Counted from the whole stretch's first letter, positions 39,418 to 61,619 are shown. The stretch is DNA of 63,385 nt, filler included, from Octopus bimaculoides (GCF_001194135.2; 6 parts of 5 records of this genome joined end to end with filler, not necessarily neighbours in it), one strand, 5' to 3'. The notes: generated by a model not told the origin, from the sequence alone. Program-made: numbers and translations.

Positions 39418-39704
39418 NNNNNNNNNNNNNNNNNNNNNNNNNNNNNNNNNNNNNNNNNNNNTTAATTAATTAANNNNNNNNNNNNNNNNNNNNNNNNNNN
39501 NNNNNNNNNNNNNNNNNAGTTATCCCTCTCACCTCGATCTGCAGCACGTGCTGCAGATCGAGGTGAGAGGGATAACTTCCCTTGGCAAACAGGACACAGT
39601 CGTGTGTCGATAAGCCAGCTGGAGGAGATGTCCTCCTGGGGCTAAAAGCAACAGTAACATCCACCCCTAGGGGTCAGCCACACTTAAGTGGCAATATACT
39701 ACAC

Positions 39705-39957: not shown

Positions 39958-40025
39958 TTAACACTGGCTGACAGCATTTTCTGAAGTGCCACATAGAGTT
40001 TTCACTTTTGTCTGTTCACACTGAT
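39958..40025 (-). CDS. Candidate terminal exon G of the tandem-VFT receptor: (N)QCEQTKVKTLCGTSENAVSQC*
   Basis: Acceptor ttttgtcttacag; the phase-1 frame required by exon F is the longest open one and ends in TAA; no clear AATAAA downstream; could be chance. Confidence 0.35.
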
Positions 40026-40339
40026 CTGTAAGACAAAATTTTATTGTGAGCTTAATGAAATGAATAAATAACCAAGAGCTAAATTAATAATGCTTTCAAA
40101 TTTTGACACAAAGCCACCAATTTTAGAGAGACGGTTAGTTAATTACATTGAATCCAGTATTAAACTGGTACATATTTTTTTTGATGCTGAAAGGATGAAA
40201 CACAAAGTCAACTTTGGCAGAATTTGAACTCAGAATGTAAAAGGCTAGAGGAAAAGCTACCCAGCAGTTGTCTGACATTCTAACAATTCTTCCATCTCAC
40301 CATTTAAATTTTAATAATAATAATAATAATAATAATAAT

Positions 40340-40766
40340 CTGTCAAGACCTACCAAAAACTGAGCAAATATAAAGATCTTGAAATAGAAATTAGCAAAAT
40401 GTGGAATCTGAAGACAAAAACAATACCTATTGTCATAGGTGCCCTGGGAATGACAGCGAAACGGGCTGATTACTACCTAGCTCAGATACCAGGAAACCCC
40501 AAAATGGCTGAAGTTCAAAAGATAGTGCTCATGGGAACTGCCCATATCCTACGTAAAATACTGTCTATGTGATCTCAAATTTTAAAACAAAAACATAATT
40601 TTCTTATGGTTTCTTAAACATTCACTAGAACAAAACTGTACAAATCCAAATATATGGTACCCTAGGCATAACACCTACATGAACTTCTAACTTGTTGTTT
40701 CTTGAGGTCTCTGGGTGAGACTTGGATCCAACTTGTACAAATGCAAAACAAAAGTCAAACATAAAA
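40340..40766 (+). mobile_element. Young Dong/R4-like LINE 3' end in (TAA)n
   Basis: KLSKYKDLEIEISKMWNLKTKTIPIVIGALG...GTAHILRKILSM* (RLE C-terminus); TAA repeats on both sides. Confidence 0.85.
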
Positions 40767-41164
40767 TAATAATAATAGTAATTATTATTATTATTATTAT
40801 TATTATAGTAATAGTAATAACAATGATAAGAGTGTAAACCACCACAAGTCTTAATTGAAAGATTGCCATCTGACCAAAATACACAAAGGCCTGAAGAAAT
40901 AAGAAATTCTAATGAACCTGATAAAGACAGCTAGGAAAGTGAGAGAGCAAAAGTATTTGAAGAACACAGAGAGTCTATGATGGAAATGAAGTAGAAAAAT
41001 CTGAATCCATTAAGAGTCGTAAGACATACAAGTATGAATGATAGAGAAATACTTCATAAACTCTGAAATACCAATCAAAATGAAAAAAAAACAAAACAAA
41101 TTACAGTTATCCACTATGTAACAAAAGAAATCATACAAGTATTAAAAGCTGATCTTACTGAGTT

Positions 41165-42760
41165 AAATGAAATTATTTACACATCTGCTAAAGCAATTCA
41201 AACAAGTTGTATGTATCCAAAAAGAACAAAGAAATCCAAACTGGAGAAGTGAAATTGAACAAGAGATTGAATTAATGAGAGGGGGAATATCAATATTAAA
41301 TGAACAAATCTGTGAAATTGATGCGAAATCTAGAAAAGGAAGAAAGATGAAGAGAAAATATGGGTTCACACCAAGGGAAGAGCTGATATCAATAAAAGAT
41401 AAACTGAGACAAATAGTCCAAGCAAAATCTCAAAGGATACAAATATCTGAGAAGGGAAACAAATTTTACAAGCAAAATAAAATGTTCACATCTGATGCAA
41501 AAATAAGTCATCTGTGTTATATGAATGACTTAAAACTCTATGCCAAAGACAATAATGTGCTTCAAGGCTTATCACTGGGAAAGTATTCAGTGATGGTATT
41601 AGGATGAAGTTTGATCTTGATAAGTATGCAGAAAGTTCCAGAAAGGGAAATTGAAGACCACAAATTCAGATGTGTTAGATGTTGACACAATTGACCCATG
41701 CTGGCAAAATGCTTAACGGTATTTGATCTGCTGTGGAGTTGTGAGTTCAAATTCCACCGAGGTCAACTTTGCCTTTCATCCTTTTGGGGTCTATTAAATA
41801 AGTACCAGTTACGCACTGGAGTCAATGTAATCGACTTAATACTTTTGTCCTTGTTTGTTCTCTCTATGTTTAGTTCCCTGCAGGCAATAAAGAGATTAAC
41901 AATTGAGCAAGAACAAACCTACAAATAAATAAAGGTTCTGGTATTAAGCATGCAAGCCTGAAAGAGAAGATCAGGAATTAATGTTTTAGGAGAGTTCAAG
42001 CAGTCCTGGAATCTGAGCCAAATATGCATAACAAGGTGTTAGTCATAAATTCTTTAGCAAATCCAGTTGTTACTTATAGCTACATTATGTTGAACTCGAA
42101 TATTAGTGAAGTAAAGAAAATTGACGGAAAAACATACAAGCTACTGAGTTCTAATAAGATGTGCCACGCAAAGGCATTTGTGGATTGTCTTTACCTTCCC
42201 AGAGCCCATAGAAGTCGAGGCTTGATCCAATTTGAACTCTCCTACGAAACCACCACAATCAGACTGGCCAGATATCTTGAAACAACAAACAACTGAATAC
42301 TAAAGCACATTGAATATCATGAGAGGCATAAGAAGCTTCAAGAAATGTGCTACTGATCTCATGCATGATACTCTGGCTGAACAACCTGAGGGAAGTGCGG
42401 CAACTGTTGTTGCAAAGAATGTGAAATTAATGGCAAAGAAAAAAATACATGAGCAATTGTATAATAGGAGGGAGGAGAGATCTCTGCATGGCAAATATGT
42501 GGTCTGTAGCAAACAAGCTGATGTAGACCAGAAGCATACCTATCAGTGCTATGGAGCTCAGGGCTAAAGGCTGAGAACAAAGGCTTTATCTTAGCTGTTC
42601 AAGATCAAAGCTTATTGACCCAGCACTACCAATTCAATGTGATGGGAAATAGAGAAGATCCAAAATGTCAATTCTGCAATGATATGGTAGAAACTTGATT
42701 GCTGGATGCAAAGTCTTAACACCTGTGGAGTATAAATCCAAGACATGATAGAGTTGGCTG
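41165..42760 (+). mobile_element. Internally deleted Dong/R4-clade LINE with a SINE A insertion (about 41700-41925)
   Basis: ORF pieces ISHLCYMNDLKLYAK (RT), NKVLVINSLANPVVTYS, LHGKY, C-x2-C zinc-knuckle region. Confidence 0.75.
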
Positions 42761-42764
42761 CCAT

Positions 42765-43450
42765 TTGCACCAATCTTTTTCAGCCATGTTGGTAGTTGAG
42801 TGCTGATACTTCCAAGTGCACCAATTACTATTGGTATCATATCTGCTCTCTTCATTGATCACAACCTTCGTATTTCCCACTTCAAATCATGATAGTTGTT
42901 TATTTTTTCTTCTTCTTTCACATTGATCCTGTTGTCACCGGGGCATGCTATGTCGATTATTATAAATGTTCTTTCTTTTTTATTCACCATATCAATATCT
43001 GGTTTCTAATATCTTGTTGGGTGATCACACTGGATCATTGTATCCCACAGGATTTTGCAATTCTCATTTTCAGTTACACCTTATGGAGTTTGCTTATACC
43101 ATGTCTTTGCACTTTGTAGGCCGTGATTTCCACAGAGCTCCTAATGGATTGTTCTTGCCACATTGTTGTAGTGCAACACCAACATCAGTCTTAAGAAATA
43201 CTCCATCCTCAGTTGCTCTTTCATTTCCTTTTCCATTATCTCATTGAACTCTAGTACACCAAAGTATTTGTATCCTTCCGTTTCAATTTGTTTAATAAAG
43301 TCTCTATTTGGTAATTCTGTCCCTGCTAGGCACTGTATCTTGCCTCTTTTTAGGTAGATTATTCCGCACTTCTTGAGTCCAAATTCCATTCTAATATCAG
43401 TACTAAAGCAGTCGACTTGATCCGCTCCCCCAAGCTGCTCTTGTGGCAAA
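42765..43450 (-). mobile_element. Second Dong/R4-clade LINE fragment, opposite orientation
   Basis: FSTDIRMEFGLKKCGIIYLKRGK...YKYFGVLE and IPIVIGALG; adjoins a (TTA)n tract. Confidence 0.75.
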
Positions 43451-43459
43451 AATTTGAAA

Positions 43460-43506
<47 letters not shown>

Positions 43507-43535
43507 TGAAGCAGCAGCAGCAGCAGCAGTAGCAA

Positions 43536-43568
<33 letters not shown>

Positions 43569-43727
43569 GAAGAAGGATGAGAGACAATAATAAAAAGCAG
43601 GAAAAGGAAAGAGGGAGAGTTAGTAAGTTCAAAAGGGTAAAGGTGAGGAAAATACAGATAAAAAAGACTAAGATTCTAAATATTAAAAGAAAGGGAAGGA
43701 AAAAAGAAGAGGTGAAAACTATCTTAC

Positions 43728-43980
43728 TTTTCATTCTTGATATAAAAGCTCCTCCAGCCACAATAAGAATAATCACAAGTATGAACGCTCCTATAGCGAA
43801 AATAAGTCCAGTATGATCAAATGGCAATTTGGGTTCTTTCGTGATTGTGCTGTTATCGCAGCAATCCATATTTTCAGCACACTCAACTTTCAATTCAGAT
43901 ATTTCCTCTCTCTTATGATTATAAAGCTTCATTCTAGTTTTATCAATGGTAAGACCACTTTCTTGGCTAAATGAACCAAT
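43728..43980 (-). CDS. Exon F: end of VFT2, 3-Cys linker and TM helix (IGSFSQESGL...ECAENMDCCDNS...GLIFAIGAFILVIILIVAGGAFISRMK)
   Basis: Acceptor tttcag at 43981, donor gtaaga at 43727; phase 0 start matches exon E; ends in phase 1. Confidence 0.85.
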
Positions 43981-45796: not shown

Positions 45797-48180
45797 GCCA
45801 ATGTTCTGCGCCATGAGGACTAAAGACTTGAGGTATTTCGTGTTGCAAGACAGTGTGTGAGAGATAATTGTGATGTCGTGGGAGAGAAATGTGTTCGCAT
45901 GGATGATGGTACGCTTGCACTAAACGAGACTGCAAAGAAAGAGGTATGGAGACGCCACTATGAAAGGTTGCTCAATAAAGAAAATGAATGGGAGGAATAG
46001 AGTCTGCCGAATGTCGACGCAACAGAGAGACCAGCGATTCGAGTTGACAGTACTATGGTAGATAAAGCTATTAAGAGTATGAAGACAGGGAAAGCCCCCG
46101 GCCCTTCATGAATCACTGCAGAATGCTCAAAATATCTGGCAGTGTCGGCTATAGCCTAGTCACCCGTATTGTTAACCAGGTGATACATGAAGGAGTCATA
46201 CCCAATGACTGGTGTAGCAGCACCATAGTCAACTGCTACAAAGGTAAAGGTGACGCTTTAGATACAAATAATTACAGAGGTATCAAGTTGTTAGATCAGG
46301 TAATGAAAGTCATGGAGAGGGTCATAGCCCAACTAATTAGGGAGAGAGTCAGTTTAGATGAGATGCAGGGAAAAGCACCACTGATGCTATATTTCTGATA
46401 AGACAGCTGCAGCAGAAATACCTAGCCAAGGATAAACTTCTGTACCTAGCTTTCGTTGACATGGGGAAAGCCTTTGACAGGGTCCCCCGATCCCTTATCT
46501 GGTGGTCAATGAGGAAACTAGGGATAGAAGAATGGTTAGTGAGAGCTGTGTGAGCCATGTACAGAGACGCTGTCAGTAAGGTGAGGGTTGGCAACGAGTA
46601 CAGTGAAGAATTCCGGGTAGAGGTAGGGGTCCACCAAGGTTCAGTCCTCAGCCCCCTCCTATTTATCATAGTCCTCCAGGCGATAACAGAGGAATTCAAG
46701 ACAGGATGCCCTTGGGAGCTCCTCTATGCTGATGACCTTGCACTAATTGCTGAGTCACTATCAGGACTGGAGAAATTTCAGGTGTGGAAGCAAGGACTAG
46801 AATTGAAGGGCCTTAGAGTCAACCTAGCTAAAACCAAAATCCTAATAAGTAGGAAGGTAGAAAAAACACGAACCCCTTCAGGTAGATGGCACTGCTCGAT
46901 TTGTAGAAAAGGCGTAGGTAGAAACTCTATAAGATGCACCCAGTGCAAGCTATGGACACATAAGAGGTGCAGCAATATCAAAGGAAGGTTAACTAGGAAG
47001 TTAGTTTTTGTATGTAGCAGATGTTCAGGAGCAATAAACACTGTAAATGTGCAGAAAACAACTTCTGCCACGTTCCAGGGAGAAAAACTAGACGTAGTTG
47101 ATAGCTTCCATTACCTAGGTAACCAAGTTAGTAGCAGGGGAGGGATGCGCTGAAAGTGTAGCTACTAGAATAAGAATAGCCTGGGCAAAGTTCAGAGAGC
47201 TCTTACCTCTGCTGGTGACAAGGGGCCTCTCACTCAGAGTAAAAGGCAGACTGTATGACGCATGTGTACAAACAGCCATGCTTCATGGCAGTGAAACATG
47301 GGCCATGACTGCTGAGGACATGTGTAAGCTCGCAAGGAATGAAGCCAATATGCTCCGATGGATGTATAATGTCAGTGTGCATACTAGACAGAGTGTTAGT
47401 ACCTTGAGAGAAAAGTTGAACTTACGAAGCATCAGTTGTGGTGTGCAAGAGAGACGATTGCGCTGCTATGGTCATGTAGCAAGAATGGATGAGGATAGCT
47501 GTGTGAAAAAGTGCCACACCCTAGCAGTTGAGGGAACCTGTGGAAGAGGTAGGCCCAGGAAGACCTGGGATGAGGTGGTGAGGCACGACCTTCGAACATT
47601 GGGCCTTACCGAGGCGATGACTTTTGACCGAGACCTCTGGAAATATGCTGTGCATGAGAAGACCCGGCAAGCCATGTGAGACCTAAATCTAAGGCCTCAG
47701 CCAGCCCACTTCTGCATACCTTCCTTCATTGGACACTAAACTCCGCTTGCGAAGACCTGTTGAAGCAAGTGAAATCGAAATTGAATTAGATTTGACGACT
47801 GGCACCCATGCCAATGTCGTCTCCTTCATTAGACACGAAATTCGGCTTGCGAAGACCTGTTGGTCCAAACAAAAGTGAAATCGTCATAGCACCTGTGCCC
47901 AGCATCGCCTCCCTGGCACTTGTGCTAGATGGCATGTGTGAAGACATTCGAGTGAGATCGTTGCCAGTACCGCCTGACTGGCCTTCGTGCCGGTGGCACA
48001 TAAAAGCACCCACTACACTCTCGGAGTGGTTGGCGTTAGGAAGGGCATCCAGCTGTAGAAACTCTTCCAAAATCAGATTGGAGCCTGGTGCAGCCATCTG
48101 GTTTCACCAGTCCTCAGTCAAATCGTCCAACCCATGCTAGTATGGAAAGCAGACGTTAAACGACGATGATGATGATGATG
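45797..48180 (+). mobile_element. 5'-truncated RTE-clade LINE with a PHD-like Cys/His insert and (GAT)n tail
   Basis: RT motifs KAFDRVP, GVHQGSVLSPLLF, LLYADDL, YLG; CSICRKGVGRNSIRCTQCKLWTHKRC...VCSRC; stops and frameshifts. Confidence 0.92.
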
Positions 48181-48244
48181 TTATTTTACATTTTAATGTG
48201 AAACAAAAATTACAAAAATAGCAATATTTAAGTAAACTACTTAC

Positions 48245-49469
48245 TTTTTTGTATGTATATTTCCCATCTTCATATTGGACATTATGGAACTGAAAACCTA
48301 TCAGTCCATTTCCATGAGAATCAAACATTTTCACAGCATCTAATGAGTTTAATATCTCAGTTTCTTTTATGGTTAAAACCAATTCTTCAGCTTTGCTTGA
48401 AAATTCTTCACACATTTTTCCACTGCATTTTTCATTAATTAATTTCTTTAACCCATTATGTATTGCATAAACTGCATTCATTGTTTGAACAATTCTGTGA
48501 TTATTTACATACAAATCAATATCGTTGTCAGAAAAAGTTTTCTTAATGCATGTAGATGCTTTTTTTGATGGATCACACATATACTGGTTCCAAAAATACT
48601 TAAAGTATGGGTTTTTTAAGTGGTTCAAACTTGCATCTTTCTCTTTTAAATATTTTTTGAAACTTATTCCCTCTTTTAAAAGAGCTCGTTTTGAACTATC
48701 AACAGTTATGATAATAGAGCCAGCAAACACATGGCCGTAACTTAAAATCAAATTGTTCTTCCCCCATGCATCACTCCCAATAAAAGTAAAAAAGTTATGC
48801 ATTTTCCTTTGATTCAAAGATTCAAGAAGATCTACAGTTCGGGAACTGGTGCCAAAGTATATGATAACTTTAATATTTTTAATCAATGCCACGGAAAATA
48901 TTTCATCAAATTCATCATGTTTGGTTTTTATTTTACTATCAGCAATACCTTTAAATGGGAACAAACATATCTGATTCTCCTTAGCAGCCGAAAGTAAAAG
49001 CTGTTTTGCTTTTAGTCCGTAGTTGTTTGTGGCATAAATTAGCCCAACATATCGCCAATCAAAGTGTTTCAAAATTTGAATTATAGCATTTACTTGCTGA
49101 TTATCACTTGGAACTGTCCGTAGGAAATAGGGATATGAAATCCGATCATCTAGGTCTTCAGACGAAGCTGCATAGGAAATTACTGGTCTTTTCAAGAGCA
49201 TGAATACATTAGCTATAGCTTTTGTAACAGAACTTGAAAGAGAACCAACAACACCGACAATATTTGATGGAGAAATGAGTTGACAAGTACTAATATCCTT
49301 GATTTTTGTTTCACCAGACAGAATGCTTGTAATATTTGAATGTGCACGTAATGGGTTGTAGCAGTCATCCAGCAACAGAGCTCCAAGTTTAACGCTGTCA
49401 CTGATTGTTTTAAACTTGTTCACATAATACAGGAAAGCTTCTCCAGCAATTGTGTCAATGAAAGGTTTT
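48245..49469 (-). CDS. Exon E: mGluR-like Venus-flytrap domain 2 (ANF-receptor/PBP1 fold)
   Basis: 1225-nt open exon: EAFLYYVN..KLGALLLDDC, IVGVVGSLSSSV, ISYAASS..L.D...YPYFLRTVPSD, WRYV, NNYG, GSDAWG, NPYF..FW, NAVYAI; acceptor ttccag, donor gtaagt; phases 2 to 0. Confidence 0.95.
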
Positions 49470-50183: not shown

Positions 50184-50410
50184 CTTACATCACCACAACC
50201 AAAACCTTGACCTCTGTCATGAAGTGAGAAGATGCCTAATATTAAGATGTTTCCTGATACGTACACAACATTATCATCATTAAATGATAGACTTTCAGGA
50301 CAAGCTTTGGAATATTTTGAAGTGAGAGTTGCAAATGATGATAGATTATCATTCATCTTTATCGCAGAGGATTCCAATTGCAAACTATCATTTGAGAAAT
50401 ATTCGCCAAC
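50184..50410 (-). CDS. Exon D: inter-VFT linker and start of VFT2 (VGEYFSNDSLQL...GNILILGIFSLHDRGQGFGCGDVR)
   Basis: Acceptor tttcag, donor gttagt; GNILILGIFSLH...C matches mGluR GD..LG.LF..H...C; phase 0 to 2, AG+A gives Arg with exon E. Confidence 0.92.
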
Positions 50411-50694
50411 CTGAAATATATACAACAAAATTAATGTTAACAACAATTTCAAATGATCTTTATAATATATTTGTTTTAGTTGAAAGTTTCTCATTTATCT
50501 CATTTATCATCTTACATATTGACTCAGCTGCAGAAAGATATGGTTTCTACTGTGTCAAAGCAAATCACATCTAAATGCTTAATGTTCAACCCATCTCAAT
50601 GGATGACAAATATCATCCACCTATGTAAACCCCACTACATTCCTCACACAATCAAAGCATTCACTCTCAAAACCCCAAAGATTTATTAGTAGCT

Positions 50695-52845: not shown

Positions 52846-53571
52846 CTTTTGGAAAATGCTTTTTTTTACTAAATACACATTCAAAATGGCTGCCATGGAG
52901 TTTTCTTTTAAGCCAAGTGCACTTCTAGAAAAACAATCTGGAACAATTTGGTCGTCAGTAAGAACACTTCTCAGGTTTTCAGGATTTAAGTATGTTGAAC
53001 ATTTAAGCCTCTTGCATTCCTTTTGTTTAGCAAGTGCAATGCCATAAACAGACTCCATGATAGCTCTTGTATGAATTATCCTTTGTCCATTGTGAGGAAT
53101 ATTTTTTGAACTGATTTTTGTTACATCCAGGATATTTCGTACCCATTGATATAATGTATCATTTTTAAAATGTGTTAAAGTTTTTATATCCCTCAGATAA
53201 TCTTCAAATTCCTTGTTGTTAAGGCTTGATGAAGTTACTACATAGGAACCTTCCATATTAGAATGGTTTTTAAGCTCATTTTGTAGTTTCCCAGAAATAT
53301 CTAAAATTATCCAGGTCATATCTTTGATATGAAGAAAGGAATCAATATTTTGTATTTCGCCAACATATATTATTCCAGAGGAGAAGCTTTCACGAAGAAA
53401 CCTTATTTCATCTAATGCATTCTTAGAAAATGCTCTTTTCATTGAAAAACAGATACCATCACTTTTTGCTTTTGCCTCTAACATGTTAGCCATTTCAATT
53501 CCATATTCATTATCAGAGTAGACAATTCCAGGAGAAACCCATTTCAATCTCTTTAAAAGCATTATTGCAGC
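52846..53571 (-). CDS. Exon C: C-terminal part of degenerate VFT1
   Basis: 726-nt open exon AAIMLLKRLKWVSPGIVYSDNEYG...DGICF...MESVYGIA...; acceptor ttctag, donor gttagt; phase 0 to 0. Confidence 0.9.
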
Positions 53572-54715: not shown

Positions 54716-54873
54716 CTTAACTTGAGTTTCCATGGGTAAAGCAAAAGATATAAAATTCTTATAAGACGGAAATGCCATCTGTTCAAATAAAGGGCTAATT
54801 ACTGGTAATGAAATATATTTGGTTGTTTCAAGTAGAGATTCAGTCACAGAATAGTCGCCAAGGGAAATAATTG
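54716..54873 (-). CDS. Exon B of VFT1 (AIISLGDYSVTESLL...LPVISP...FALPMETQVK)
   Basis: Acceptor ttcccacag, donor gtaatt; phase 1 to 0; colinear with mGluR GVIG..SS..S / P.ISY / R..P.D..Q. Confidence 0.85.
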
Positions 54874-57354: not shown

Positions 57355-57486
57355 CTGTGTATGGAGTGCCTTTCTTTGTGCTTGGTTCACCACAAAGACC
57401 ATCTTGAGAATAAGGAGATTTGTATATATCATATACATAATTAGCTGCAATCTCTGGTTCTCCACAAATATCAAATATGGTAAATT
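57355..57486 (-). CDS. Exon A of VFT1 (FTIFDICGEPEIAANYVYDIY...LCGEP...TPYT); most 5' exon visible
   Basis: Acceptor ttgattaacag, donor gtaagc; phase 1 to 1; I.DIC matches mGluR I.DTC. Confidence 0.8.
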
Positions 57487-59769: not shown

Positions 59770-61619
59770 CGATTTGACTGAGGACTGGTGAACCAGATGG
59801 CTACACCAGGCTCCAATCTGATTTGGCAGAGTTTCTACAGCTGGATTCCCTTCCTAACACCAACCACTCTGAGAGTGTAGTGGGTGCTTTTACGTGCCAC
59901 CGGCATGAAGCCCAGTCAGGAAGTACTGGCAACGGCCACACTTCAAATTGTGTATTTTACGTGCCACCTGCACAGGAGCCAGTCCAGCGGTACTGGCAAC
60001 GAACTCGCTCGAATGTCTTTTCACATGCCACTGGTACAAGTGCCAGGAAGGCAACGTTGGTAACGGTCACGCTCAAATGGTGCTATTTACGTGCCACCGC
60101 CACGAAAGCCAGACAGCTGGTGCTCTGGCAACGATCACGCTCAGACGGTGCTCTTAGTGATTTACTGGTACTGGTACCATCACAATTTTGCTTTTGCTTG
60201 CCCCAACAGGTCTTTGCAAGCCGAGTTTAGTGTTCAATGACGATGTTGGCATGGGTGCCAGTCTACAAATTTAGTTCGATTTCGATTTCAATTTCACTTG
60301 CCTCAACATGTCTTCGCAAGCGGAGTTTAGTGTCCAAAGAAGGAATGTTACGCATAAGTGGGCTGGTTACATCCCTGGCAGAGGCCTTGGATTTTGGTCT
60401 CACTTGACTTGCCGGGTCTTCTCACGCACAGCATATTTCCAAATGTCTCGGTCAAAAGTCATTGCCTCGGTGAGGCCTAAAGTTCGTAGGTCGTGCTTCA
60501 CCACCTCATCCCAGGTCTTCCTGGGCCTGCCTCTTCTACGGGTTCCCTCAAGCGCTAGGGTGTGGCACTTTTTCACACAGCTATCCTCATCCATTCTCGC
60601 CACATGTCCATACCAGCGCAATCGTCTCTCTTGCACACCACAACTGATGCTTCTTAGGTTCAACTTTTCTCTCAAGATACTTACACTCTGTCAGGTATGC
60701 ACACTGACATTACTCATCCACCGGAGCATGCTGGCTTCATTCCTTGTGAGCTTACGCATGTCCTCAGCAGTCAAGGCCCATGTTTCACAGCCATGTAGCA
60801 TTGCTGTTCGTACACATGCGTCATACAGTCTGTCTTTTACTCTGAGCAAGATACCCTTTGTCGCCAGCAGAGGTAAGAGCTCTCTGAACTTTGCCCAGGC
60901 TATTCTTATTCTAGCAGCTACACTTTCAGCACACCCACCCCCACTACTAACTTGGTCACCCAGATAGGGGAAGCTATCAACTACCTCTAGTTTTTGTCCC
61001 TGGAATGAGACAGAAGTTGTTTTCTGCATATTTTCAGTGTTTATTGCACCTGAACGTCTGCCACATACAAAAACTAACTTCCTAGTTAACCTGCCTTTGA
61101 TATTGCTGCACCTCTTATGTGTCCATAGCTTGCACTGTGTGTCCATAGCTTGTACACACAACTTATGTGCCCATAGCTTGCATCTTATAGAGTTTCTACC
61201 TACACCTTTTCTACAGATCAAGCAGGGTCATCTACCTGAAGGGGTCTGTGTTTTGTCTACCTTCCTACTTATTAGAACTTTGGTTTTAGCTAAGTTGACC
61301 CTAAGGCCCTTCAATTCTAGTCACTGCTTCCACACCTGAAACTTATCCTCTAGTTCTGATAGTGATTCAGCAATTAGTGCAAGGTCATCAGCATAGAGGA
61401 GCTCCCAGGGGCATTTTGTCCTGAATTCCTCTGTTATCGCCTGGAGGACTATGATAAATAGGAGGGGGCTGAGGACAGAACCTTGGTAGACCCCTACCTT
61501 TACCCAGAATTCTTCACTGTACTCATTGCCAACCCTCACCTTACTGACAGCGTCTCTGTACATGGCTCGCACAGCTCTCACTAACCATTCTTCTATCCCT
61601 AGTTTCCTCATTGATCACC
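59770..61619 (-). mobile_element. RTE LINE copy, same family as 45797-48180, running into a scaffold gap
   Basis: GVYQGSVLSPLLF, LLYADDL, PHD-like insert, GRPRKTW C-terminus, 3' UTR. Confidence 0.9.

Follow-up and report, generated by a model that had tools for sequence, protein, structure and literature searches.

The gene LOC106872190 of Octopus bimaculoides encodes a protein in which two Venus flytrap (VFT) modules in series are followed by one transmembrane (TM) helix and a short tail, and this single-pass ending is not an assembly artifact. The gene lies on the minus strand of a 63,385-nt stretch of O. bimaculoides DNA (the window; six parts of five records of the genome joined end to end with filler), and the first gene model was identical (100%, homology search) to the RefSeq product XP_014774575.1 (1022 aa, "uncharacterized protein"). 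From the N-terminus, the protein comprises a signal peptide, VFT1, a flexible linker of ~30 residues, VFT2, a stalk with the cysteine pattern C-x5-CC, the TM helix and a predicted cytoplasmic stub of ~26 residues without a catalytic or G-protein-coupling domain. On balance, it is probably a membrane-tethered, amino-acid-binding co-receptor or ligand sink, of type-I single-pass topology and without an effector domain. It is a tail-less variant of an unnamed family of tandem-VFT single-pass proteins, sampled in molluscs and one brachiopod. The RefSeq "uncharacterized protein" models for the locus are essentially right and not truncated.

The C-terminal end of the protein

Exon 7 (window 43728-43980, minus; acceptor tttcag, donor GTAAGA in phase 1) encodes the last strands of VFT2, the stalk, the TM helix and the residues RMK, and its donor is conserved in O. 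sinensis. The translated stalk (...ELKVECAENMDCCDNST...) holds exactly three Cys, all within the motif ECAENMDCC (43855-43881, minus; aa 949-957), and no NCD3G domain (PF07562) was detected by Pfam; an earlier note, made from the DNA alone, had reported these three Cys in place of the nine-Cys domain of class C receptors. The hydrophobic helix with trailing basic residues that the same note described is GLIFAIGAFILVIILIVAGGAFI (43738-43806, minus; aa 974-996), followed by SRMK. A hydropathy scan of the whole protein gave two hydrophobic peaks only, the signal peptide and this C-terminal helix (Kyte-Doolittle peak 2.98), and the AlphaFold2 model contained a helix at residues 973-1003 followed by a disordered tail. 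Pfam matches were limited to ANF_receptor (PF01094, two stretches) and Peripla_BP_6 (PF13458); neither Lig_chan (PF00060) nor PF10613 was found by Pfam in the octopus protein or its relatives. The protein is not a G-protein-coupled receptor (GPCR) of class C, Venus kinase receptor (VKR), receptor cyclase or ionotropic glutamate receptor, as the defining domains were absent when tested.

The predicted terminal coding exon, exon 8 (39958-40025, minus; acceptor ttgtcttacag), reads (N)QCEQTKVKTLCGTSENAVSQC and then TAA. It contributes the 22-aa peptide NQCEQTKVKTLCGTSENAVSQC*, whose C-terminal residue is Cys, so that XP_014774575.1 ends ...AFISRMK-NQCEQTKVKTLCGTSENAVSQC. Exons 2-8, concatenated in an exact spliced reconstruction, match XP_014774575.1 at each residue, and all borders are AG/GT. 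The phase-compatible exon and the tail of about 25 aa ending in Cys that the earlier note had predicted thus correspond to a RefSeq-identical exon; neither tail nor Cys proved to be conserved (see below).

To look for coding sequence of a further domain, the DNA from the TM exon up to the next gene downstream was translated in its three sense frames, and each open segment of 30 codons or more was scanned with Pfam. This neighbor is encoded on the same strand and is of the NitFhit type (CN_hydrolase and HIT domains; O. bimaculoides locus L001, 44597 onward; O. sinensis locus L002, 65305 onward). Its synteny is common to O. bimaculoides and O. sinensis, and the space available for hidden further exons is therefore bounded. 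In O. sinensis, the locus of the orthologue (LOC115210858; isoform X1, 1014 aa) has no gaps until past the NitFhit start. Its 11.3 kb of gap-free DNA between TM exon and NitFhit gave a weak RVT_1 fragment as the sole Pfam match, and neither 7tm_3 nor a kinase or cyclase domain; thus there is no substrate in this interval for splicing from 43728 into such exons. The same search in O. bimaculoides, outside its gaps, gave no 7tm_3, kinase or cyclase match and low-complexity noise only, and no significant Pfam family was found in open reading frames on either strand of intron 7. Both the O. sinensis X1 isoform and the O. vulgaris model likewise have one TM helix, then a short tail, and end. The earlier note's statement that no 7TM, kinase or cyclase exon follows therefore stands. 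Its caution that N gaps could hide exons was right as to the gaps, which are real and persist in the chromosome-level O. bimaculoides assembly (window 39518-61619 equals CM046604.1 of GCA_001194135.2 at 100% identity, with identical N gaps), and is answered as to the exons by the gap-free O. sinensis interval.

A cuttlefish transcript shows the same ending. Contig L004 (Logan, SRR29271470; 4249 nt) contains one uninterrupted 1246-aa frame and aligns to the Acanthosepion pharaonis locus as eight blocks (90-96% identity) spread over 63 kb of genome; it is therefore a spliced mRNA with an eight-exon plan like that of Octopus. Its last exon encodes a 155-aa domain-free tail after the TM helix, then a stop and 3′ untranslated region. 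A sensitive tblastn search for a homologue of this tail in the O. bimaculoides and O. sinensis loci returned noise only.

The deposited A. pharaonis protein CAE1138273.1 is mis-spliced: it exits the true terminal exon (locus L003, 71871-72602) at 72010 and joins a distant exon (83442-83588), and it also lacks part of VFT1. The contig reads through the true terminal exon to ...ESLVI* and then the 3′ untranslated region.

In O. bimaculoides, read-through of the exon 7 donor is open for ~195 further codons (window 43144-43727, minus), passing trinucleotide microsatellites and then sequence that resembles the end of a retroelement reverse transcriptase, without a Pfam match. The O. sinensis read-through closes within 30 codons. 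The frame looks like a chance open frame.

A family of tandem flytrap proteins

A HMMER search of 1.84 billion representatives was followed by a Pfam census of 37 members of the first of the two architectures into which the relatives fell (groups A and B). Group A proteins have two VFTs, one TM helix near aa 1000-1070 and a tail of about 40-700 residues without a Pfam domain. ANF_receptor and Peripla_BP_6 were the only families found in the scanned members (37/37), each with two ANF_receptor stretches and one TM helix; NCD3G, 7tm_3, kinase and cyclase domains were absent by Pfam from all of them. Group A includes bivalves (Pecten, Solemya, Pinctada, Sinanodonta, Mactra), gastropods (Haliotis, Patella, Physella, Bulinus, Batillaria) and the brachiopod Lingula, and the named members are all annotated "uncharacterized" or "hypothetical". 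The cuttlefish mRNA and the architecture of these relatives bear out the earlier note's suggestion of a single-pass VFT protein, which it took for a sensor, co-receptor or decoy, unlike mGluR, CaSR and T1R, VKR or the receptor cyclases.

When the octopus domains were searched separately with phmmer, VFT1 was closest to the relatives' first VFT and VFT2 to their second, and the tandem arrangement is therefore ancestral. The stalk is conserved as well: the residues equivalent to Cys950 and Cys956 are Cys in 37/37 group A members each, and that equivalent to Cys957 in 34/37. The three stalk Cys are thus a family-wide C-x5-CC signature that stands in place of the nine-Cys domain, not a degraded nine-Cys domain. 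The octopus protein has the two ordered VFTs, the C-x5-CC stalk and exactly one TM helix of group A; the long tail (100-700 aa) of many members is missing in Octopus.

The C-terminus of many group A tails is -(K/R)ISRV or a different hydrophobic residue, and -(K/R)ISRV is likely a PDZ-binding terminus. It was seen in P0077, P0081, P0082, P0085, P0086 and P0088 (scallop, Solemya, abalone and three further relatives), whose tails are otherwise of low complexity, and was absent from the cephalopod proteins.

Group B, whose members include a nemertean, a crinoid and amphioxus and are among the strongest HMMER matches, combines 2-5 VFTs with a genuine 7tm_3 domain after them, again without NCD3G. 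Tubulanus polymorphus XP_074641006.1 (P0067) and P0071 each have five VFTs and a 7TM domain, Anneissia japonica XP_033109263.1 (P0074) has four and a 7TM domain, and Branchiostoma floridae XP_035696128.1 ("mGluR3-like"; P0116) has two and a 7TM domain. Their TM segments lie at the C-terminus only, so these are not fused tandem genes. To our knowledge, a multi-VFT 7TM architecture without NCD3G has not been described.

In the part of the literature that was covered on animal tandem or double VFT receptors and on molluscan single-pass ANF_receptor proteins, the family was not described; only BvgS/EvgS, VKR and SmGBP were encountered, and the only tandem-VFT receptors were the bacterial BvgS/EvgS kinases. 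Searches of the same literature by LOC and accession names gave no description of the octopus protein. As the sequence already exists as a RefSeq prediction, the novelty lies in recognition of the family and its architecture.

VFT modules and the predicted ligand pocket

The best PDB match of VFT2 is mGluR3 (E 1.3e-46), and its AlphaFold2 model (predicted local distance difference test score >90) superimposes on the mGluR2/3 ectodomains with a Foldseek TM-score of 0.85. For a census of pocket residues, VFT2 was mapped to mGluR3 numbering in 37 family members. Ser151 of mGluR3 corresponds to octopus Ser587 (Ser in 35/37), Thr174 to Ser610 (Ser or Thr in 35/37), Tyr222 to Tyr658 (37/37), Asp301 to Asp741 (Asp or Glu in 35/37) and Lys389 to Arg833 (Arg or Lys in 20/37). 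VFT2 thus keeps the residues that clamp the α-amino and α-carboxylate groups of an amino acid, while Arg68 of mGluR3, which binds the distal carboxylate of glutamate, has no Arg equivalent in octopus or the family. From these two features, the predicted pocket would take an α-amino acid or a close derivative, not glutamate in its canonical pose.

VFT1 matched solved structures weakly (E 7e-4). In octopus, Tyr145 and Leu-Phe-Glu 166-168 replace the Ser and Ser-Ala-Thr of the signature, which most family members keep, so that the distal pocket of the octopus VFT1 is degenerate.

Sequence evolution in Octopus

Ratios of non-synonymous to synonymous substitution (dN/dS) were calculated by the method of Nei and Gojobori for O. 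bimaculoides versus O. sinensis. They were 0.39 for VFT1 and 0.29 for VFT2, and for exon 7 (stalk and TM helix) the ratio was 5.2 (42.5 non-synonymous versus 2.5 synonymous differences; Fisher p = 0.008), a value that draws on the few synonymous sites of a 253-nt exon and is not significantly above 1 when the gene-wide dS is used (p = 0.2). The dN of the tail was 0.59. Exon 7 Cys residues and helix hydrophobicity are kept between the two species. The contrast recurs between O. sinensis and O. vulgaris, with changes at 5/85 residues in exon 7 versus 6/635 before it (p = 0.006). From these comparisons, the VFT exons are under purifying selection, and the stalk/TM exon and tail evolve at or above the neutral rate.

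Compared with O. sinensis locus L002 53752-54004, exon 7 (window 43728-43980) differs at 45/253 nt, almost all of them non-synonymous. The intron flanking exon 7 is better conserved between O. bimaculoides and O. sinensis than the exon itself.

The exon 8 acceptor is conserved in O. sinensis and the peptide is not (NQCEQTKVKTLCGTSENAVSQC versus NHGDGETIPKVVYGD). Tails in the Octopus models extend 15-27 residues after the split Asn codon and end in -VSQC, -VYGD or -RPSY, and no position in the O. sinensis locus was found for the tail of O. vulgaris. As they are unconserved between Octopus species, the 22-aa tail and its terminal Cys carry no weight here, and the sequences offer no support for the Cys as a functional feature.

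Gene structure and other features of the window

Exon 1, which encodes the signal peptide, lies outside the window. All other exons are on the minus strand. By the spliced reconstruction, exon 2 (57355-57486) encodes the first lobe of VFT1. Exon 3 (54716-54873) also belongs to VFT1 and, by the reconstruction and residue census, holds the degenerate equivalents of mGluR Ser151 and Ala172-Thr174. Exon 4 (52846-53571) encodes the rest of VFT1 (ANF_receptor E 1.4e-5); on its own it scores 24.8 bits, slightly below the Pfam gathering score of 25.4. Exon 5 (50184-50410; acceptor at 50410) encodes the linker between the VFTs and the start of VFT2 (...GNILILGIFSLHDRGQGFGCGDV), and exon 6 (48245-49469) the mGluR-like core of VFT2 (Pfam ANF_receptor E 1.9e-38), including Ser587, Ser610, Tyr658, Asp741 and Arg833 of the α-amino-acid signature. 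The exon 6 donor, GTAAGTAG (window 48237-48248), includes an alternative donor 4 nt downstream. Intron 7 (40026-43727) contains microsatellites and frames that resemble decayed retroelement pieces, with no significant Pfam match.

Division of the locus into two tandem genes, the second starting at ATG 50494, was considered and rejected, as VFT1 is continuous with VFT2, via the acceptor at 50410, in the RefSeq protein and in every relative. The stretch 50411-50494 is intron 4 sequence, with an in-frame stop upstream of the ATG. It contains, in frame with exon 5, this ATG and a hydrophobic stretch, MRNFQLKQIYYKDHLKLLLTLILLYIFQ, that resembles a signal peptide and could make gene finders split the gene in two.

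A perfect 60-nt palindrome (AGTTATCCCTCTCACCTCGATCTGCAGCAC|GTGCTGCAGATCGAGGTGAGAGGGATAACT; window 39518-39577) abuts an N gap and looks like an assembly-edge artifact. Retroelement copies were found in introns at window 46108-47679 (plus) and 60400-61611 (minus); the open reading frame at 46557-47150 encodes an RVT_1 domain (E 2.8e-12) and a PHD finger, and similar copies (87-90% identity) recur elsewhere across the locus.

Proposed function and alternative explanations

VFT modules signal through a 7TM domain in class C GPCRs, a tyrosine kinase in VKR, a cyclase in NPR-A/B, or an ion channel. For the octopus protein, we propose that VFT2 would close on an α-amino acid or close derivative, and that VFT1, with its pocket residues replaced, may be a spacer or a module for dimerization or partner binding. 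Since anchor and stub evolve freely, the protein would act through its ectodomain and not signal through its own TM helix or tail. Class C VFTs dimerize lobe to lobe, for which reason the ectodomain could be a tethered binding subunit paired, VFT to VFT, with another receptor, e.g., a class C GPCR. Alternatively, it could be a ligand sink or decoy, as NPR-C is in its clearance of natriuretic peptides. The long disordered tail of other lophotrochozoans, often with an -ISRV or other hydrophobic PDZ-type end, probably scaffolds intracellular partners, and Octopus would have lost it.

Several observations weigh against this proposal. In O. bimaculoides, the DNA that separates the tail exon from the next gene has two N gaps of 1365 and 485 nt (L001 37635-38999 and 41148-41632), and no polyA signal (AATAAA or ATTAAA) was found in the 440 nt between the exon 8 stop and the assembly gap. 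In Octopus, the exon 7-exon 8 junction and the terminal exon are NCBI predictions, and the tail peptide is not the same in the three Octopus models, that of O. vulgaris differing again. The excess of non-synonymous change in exon 7 carries the statistical limit given with it. Finally, as group B has a 7TM domain, one cannot take it for granted that each lineage is in the single-TM state.

Of the alternatives, the one that survives best is that the main Octopus product is a secreted, TM-less tandem-VFT binding protein, with the TM exon dispensable and drifting and the membrane form minor; we regard it as unlikely. O. sinensis isoform X2 (...YKKVNWFIWQRKWFYP*) is reproduced exactly by use of a donor 4 nt downstream of the exon 6 donor (L002 46403-46410), which shifts the frame to a stop inside the TM exon. 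O. bimaculoides shares the donor pair GTAAGTAG, and use of its second GT would yield ...YKKVNWFI*, either as a TM-less tandem-VFT product or as a target of nonsense-mediated decay. Neutral or faster evolution of exon 7 and the tail beside constrained VFT exons would fit a secreted form, and SmGBP, a C-terminally truncated mGluR, is a precedent (PMC3206071). Against this, the 84-codon exon 7 frame is open in three Octopus species, although it is AT-rich and O. bimaculoides and O. sinensis have diverged by 18% in it; the hydrophobic helix and all three Cys of the stalk are also retained. In addition, the X2 mRNA is likely a target of nonsense-mediated decay because its stop lies upstream of a splice junction.

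More doubtful is that the protein binds no small ligand and is an adhesion or synaptic-organizer molecule whose VFTs contact other proteins, as the amino-terminal domains do in ionotropic glutamate receptors. The degenerate pocket of octopus VFT1, the long disordered tails with PDZ-type ends in many relatives and the lack of a signaling domain are all compatible with such a role, but the α-amino-acid backbone residues of VFT2, kept in 35-37/37 members, are hard to explain without a small-molecule ligand.

That the octopus copy is decaying toward a pseudogene, with tail and VFT1 pocket lost and the anchor drifting, seems improbable. The tail has shortened from at least 155 aa (cuttlefish, other molluscs) to an unconserved stub of 15-22 residues, VFT1 pocket residues have been replaced, and no transcript-derived Octopus protein was present in the collection searched; yet in both O. 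bimaculoides and O. sinensis each of the eight exons is intact and its splice sites are canonical, dN/dS is 0.29-0.39 over 890 VFT codons, and NCBI models two O. sinensis isoforms. Least probable by our estimate is a truncated gene model, in which the TM exon encodes a juxtamembrane helix or TM1 and transcripts continue from it into exons for a 7TM, kinase or cyclase domain, located in the gaps or further downstream: the strong phase-1 donor after the TM exon, the O. bimaculoides gaps, the unconserved predicted tail and the 7tm_3 domains of relatives with tandem VFTs and no Cys-rich domain would all allow it, but the gap-free O. sinensis interval to NitFhit holds no such coding sequence in any sense frame, the cuttlefish mRNA stops after TM helix and tail, and the 37/37 relatives that match VFT for VFT have a single TM helix and no further Pfam domain.

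Beyond the co-receptor or ligand-sink proposal, we tentatively raise as a possible broader scenario that the undescribed family is sister to the undescribed class C GPCRs with 2-5 VFTs, that it may sense amino acids with its two mGluR-derived flytraps and signal, in the absence of 7TM, kinase and cyclase domains, by means of an obligate partner or a disordered tail that binds PDZ domains, and that octopods may have reduced it to a tethered ectodomain with stalk and anchor under diversifying selection. Such selection, if true, would fit a rapidly evolving co-receptor interface, e.g., in chemotactile sensing. The family would represent a further conserved solution to the use of flytraps, with two in series, one helix and no recognizable effector domain, and would offer a natural setting in which to ask whether flytrap closure is passed on at all, and by what route, when neither a 7TM nor an enzymatic domain is present. 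It may also show how class C receptors gained and lost membrane domains and, for cephalopod biology, adds one more candidate amino-acid-binding surface protein.

Comparison with known systems

The octopus VFT2 is homologous to the domain that binds the ligand in mGluR2 and mGluR3 (group II, class C GPCRs) and keeps their Ser/Thr/Tyr/Asp backbone set. The protein differs from them in its extra N-terminal VFT and in lacking NCD3G, 7tm_3 and an Arg68 equivalent; of the features that define class C GPCRs, it has the VFT only. The multi-VFT class C receptors of Tubulanus, Anneissia and Branchiostoma share the tandem mGluR-like VFTs and the absence of NCD3G, but end in a full 7tm_3 domain, whereas the octopus family ends in one helix. 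Pfam matched neither the kinase-homology and cyclase domains of receptor guanylyl cyclases and NPR-A/B nor the Lig_chan domain of ionotropic glutamate receptors.

VKRs are amino-acid-activated invertebrate receptors with a VFT on a single TM helix (PMC2680970, PMC4026697). They carry an insulin-receptor-like tyrosine kinase, which was absent from the octopus protein, the downstream DNA and the 37 relatives. In bacterial BvgS/EvgS sensor kinases, one TM helix comes after a tandem pair of VFTs located outside the membrane (PMC4352136); their VFTs are of another periplasmic-binding-protein class and they have cytoplasmic PAS and histidine kinase domains, so the likeness is one of analogy only.

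NPR-C (NPR3) has an ectodomain of the ANF_receptor family, one TM helix and a short tail without kinase-homology or cyclase domains. It resembles the octopus protein in architecture only (one TM helix, short tail) and provides a model for a ligand-sink or co-receptor role. It differs in having one ectodomain module, which binds peptides across the dimer, where the octopus protein has two VFTs. No affinity to natriuretic receptors was seen: the best 60 PDB sequence matches included no natriuretic-peptide receptor and were all class C GPCRs (mGluR, CaSR, T1R).

The closest published precedent is SmGBP, a truncated mGluR of Schistosoma mansoni without the Cys-rich linker, 7TM or C-terminal domain, which is membrane-associated, surface-exposed and binds glutamate (PMC3206071). 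The likeness in architecture is that of a lophotrochozoan mGluR-like VFT protein without Cys-rich linker or 7TM. SmGBP has one VFT, keeps Arg68 and has an N-terminal hydrophobic peptide only, with no C-terminal TM helix (PMC3206071); in the octopus protein there are two VFTs and a C-terminal TM helix, and Arg is absent from this position. The octopus architecture is not a one-off but that of a conserved family, and NPR-C and SmGBP are loose precedents for it.

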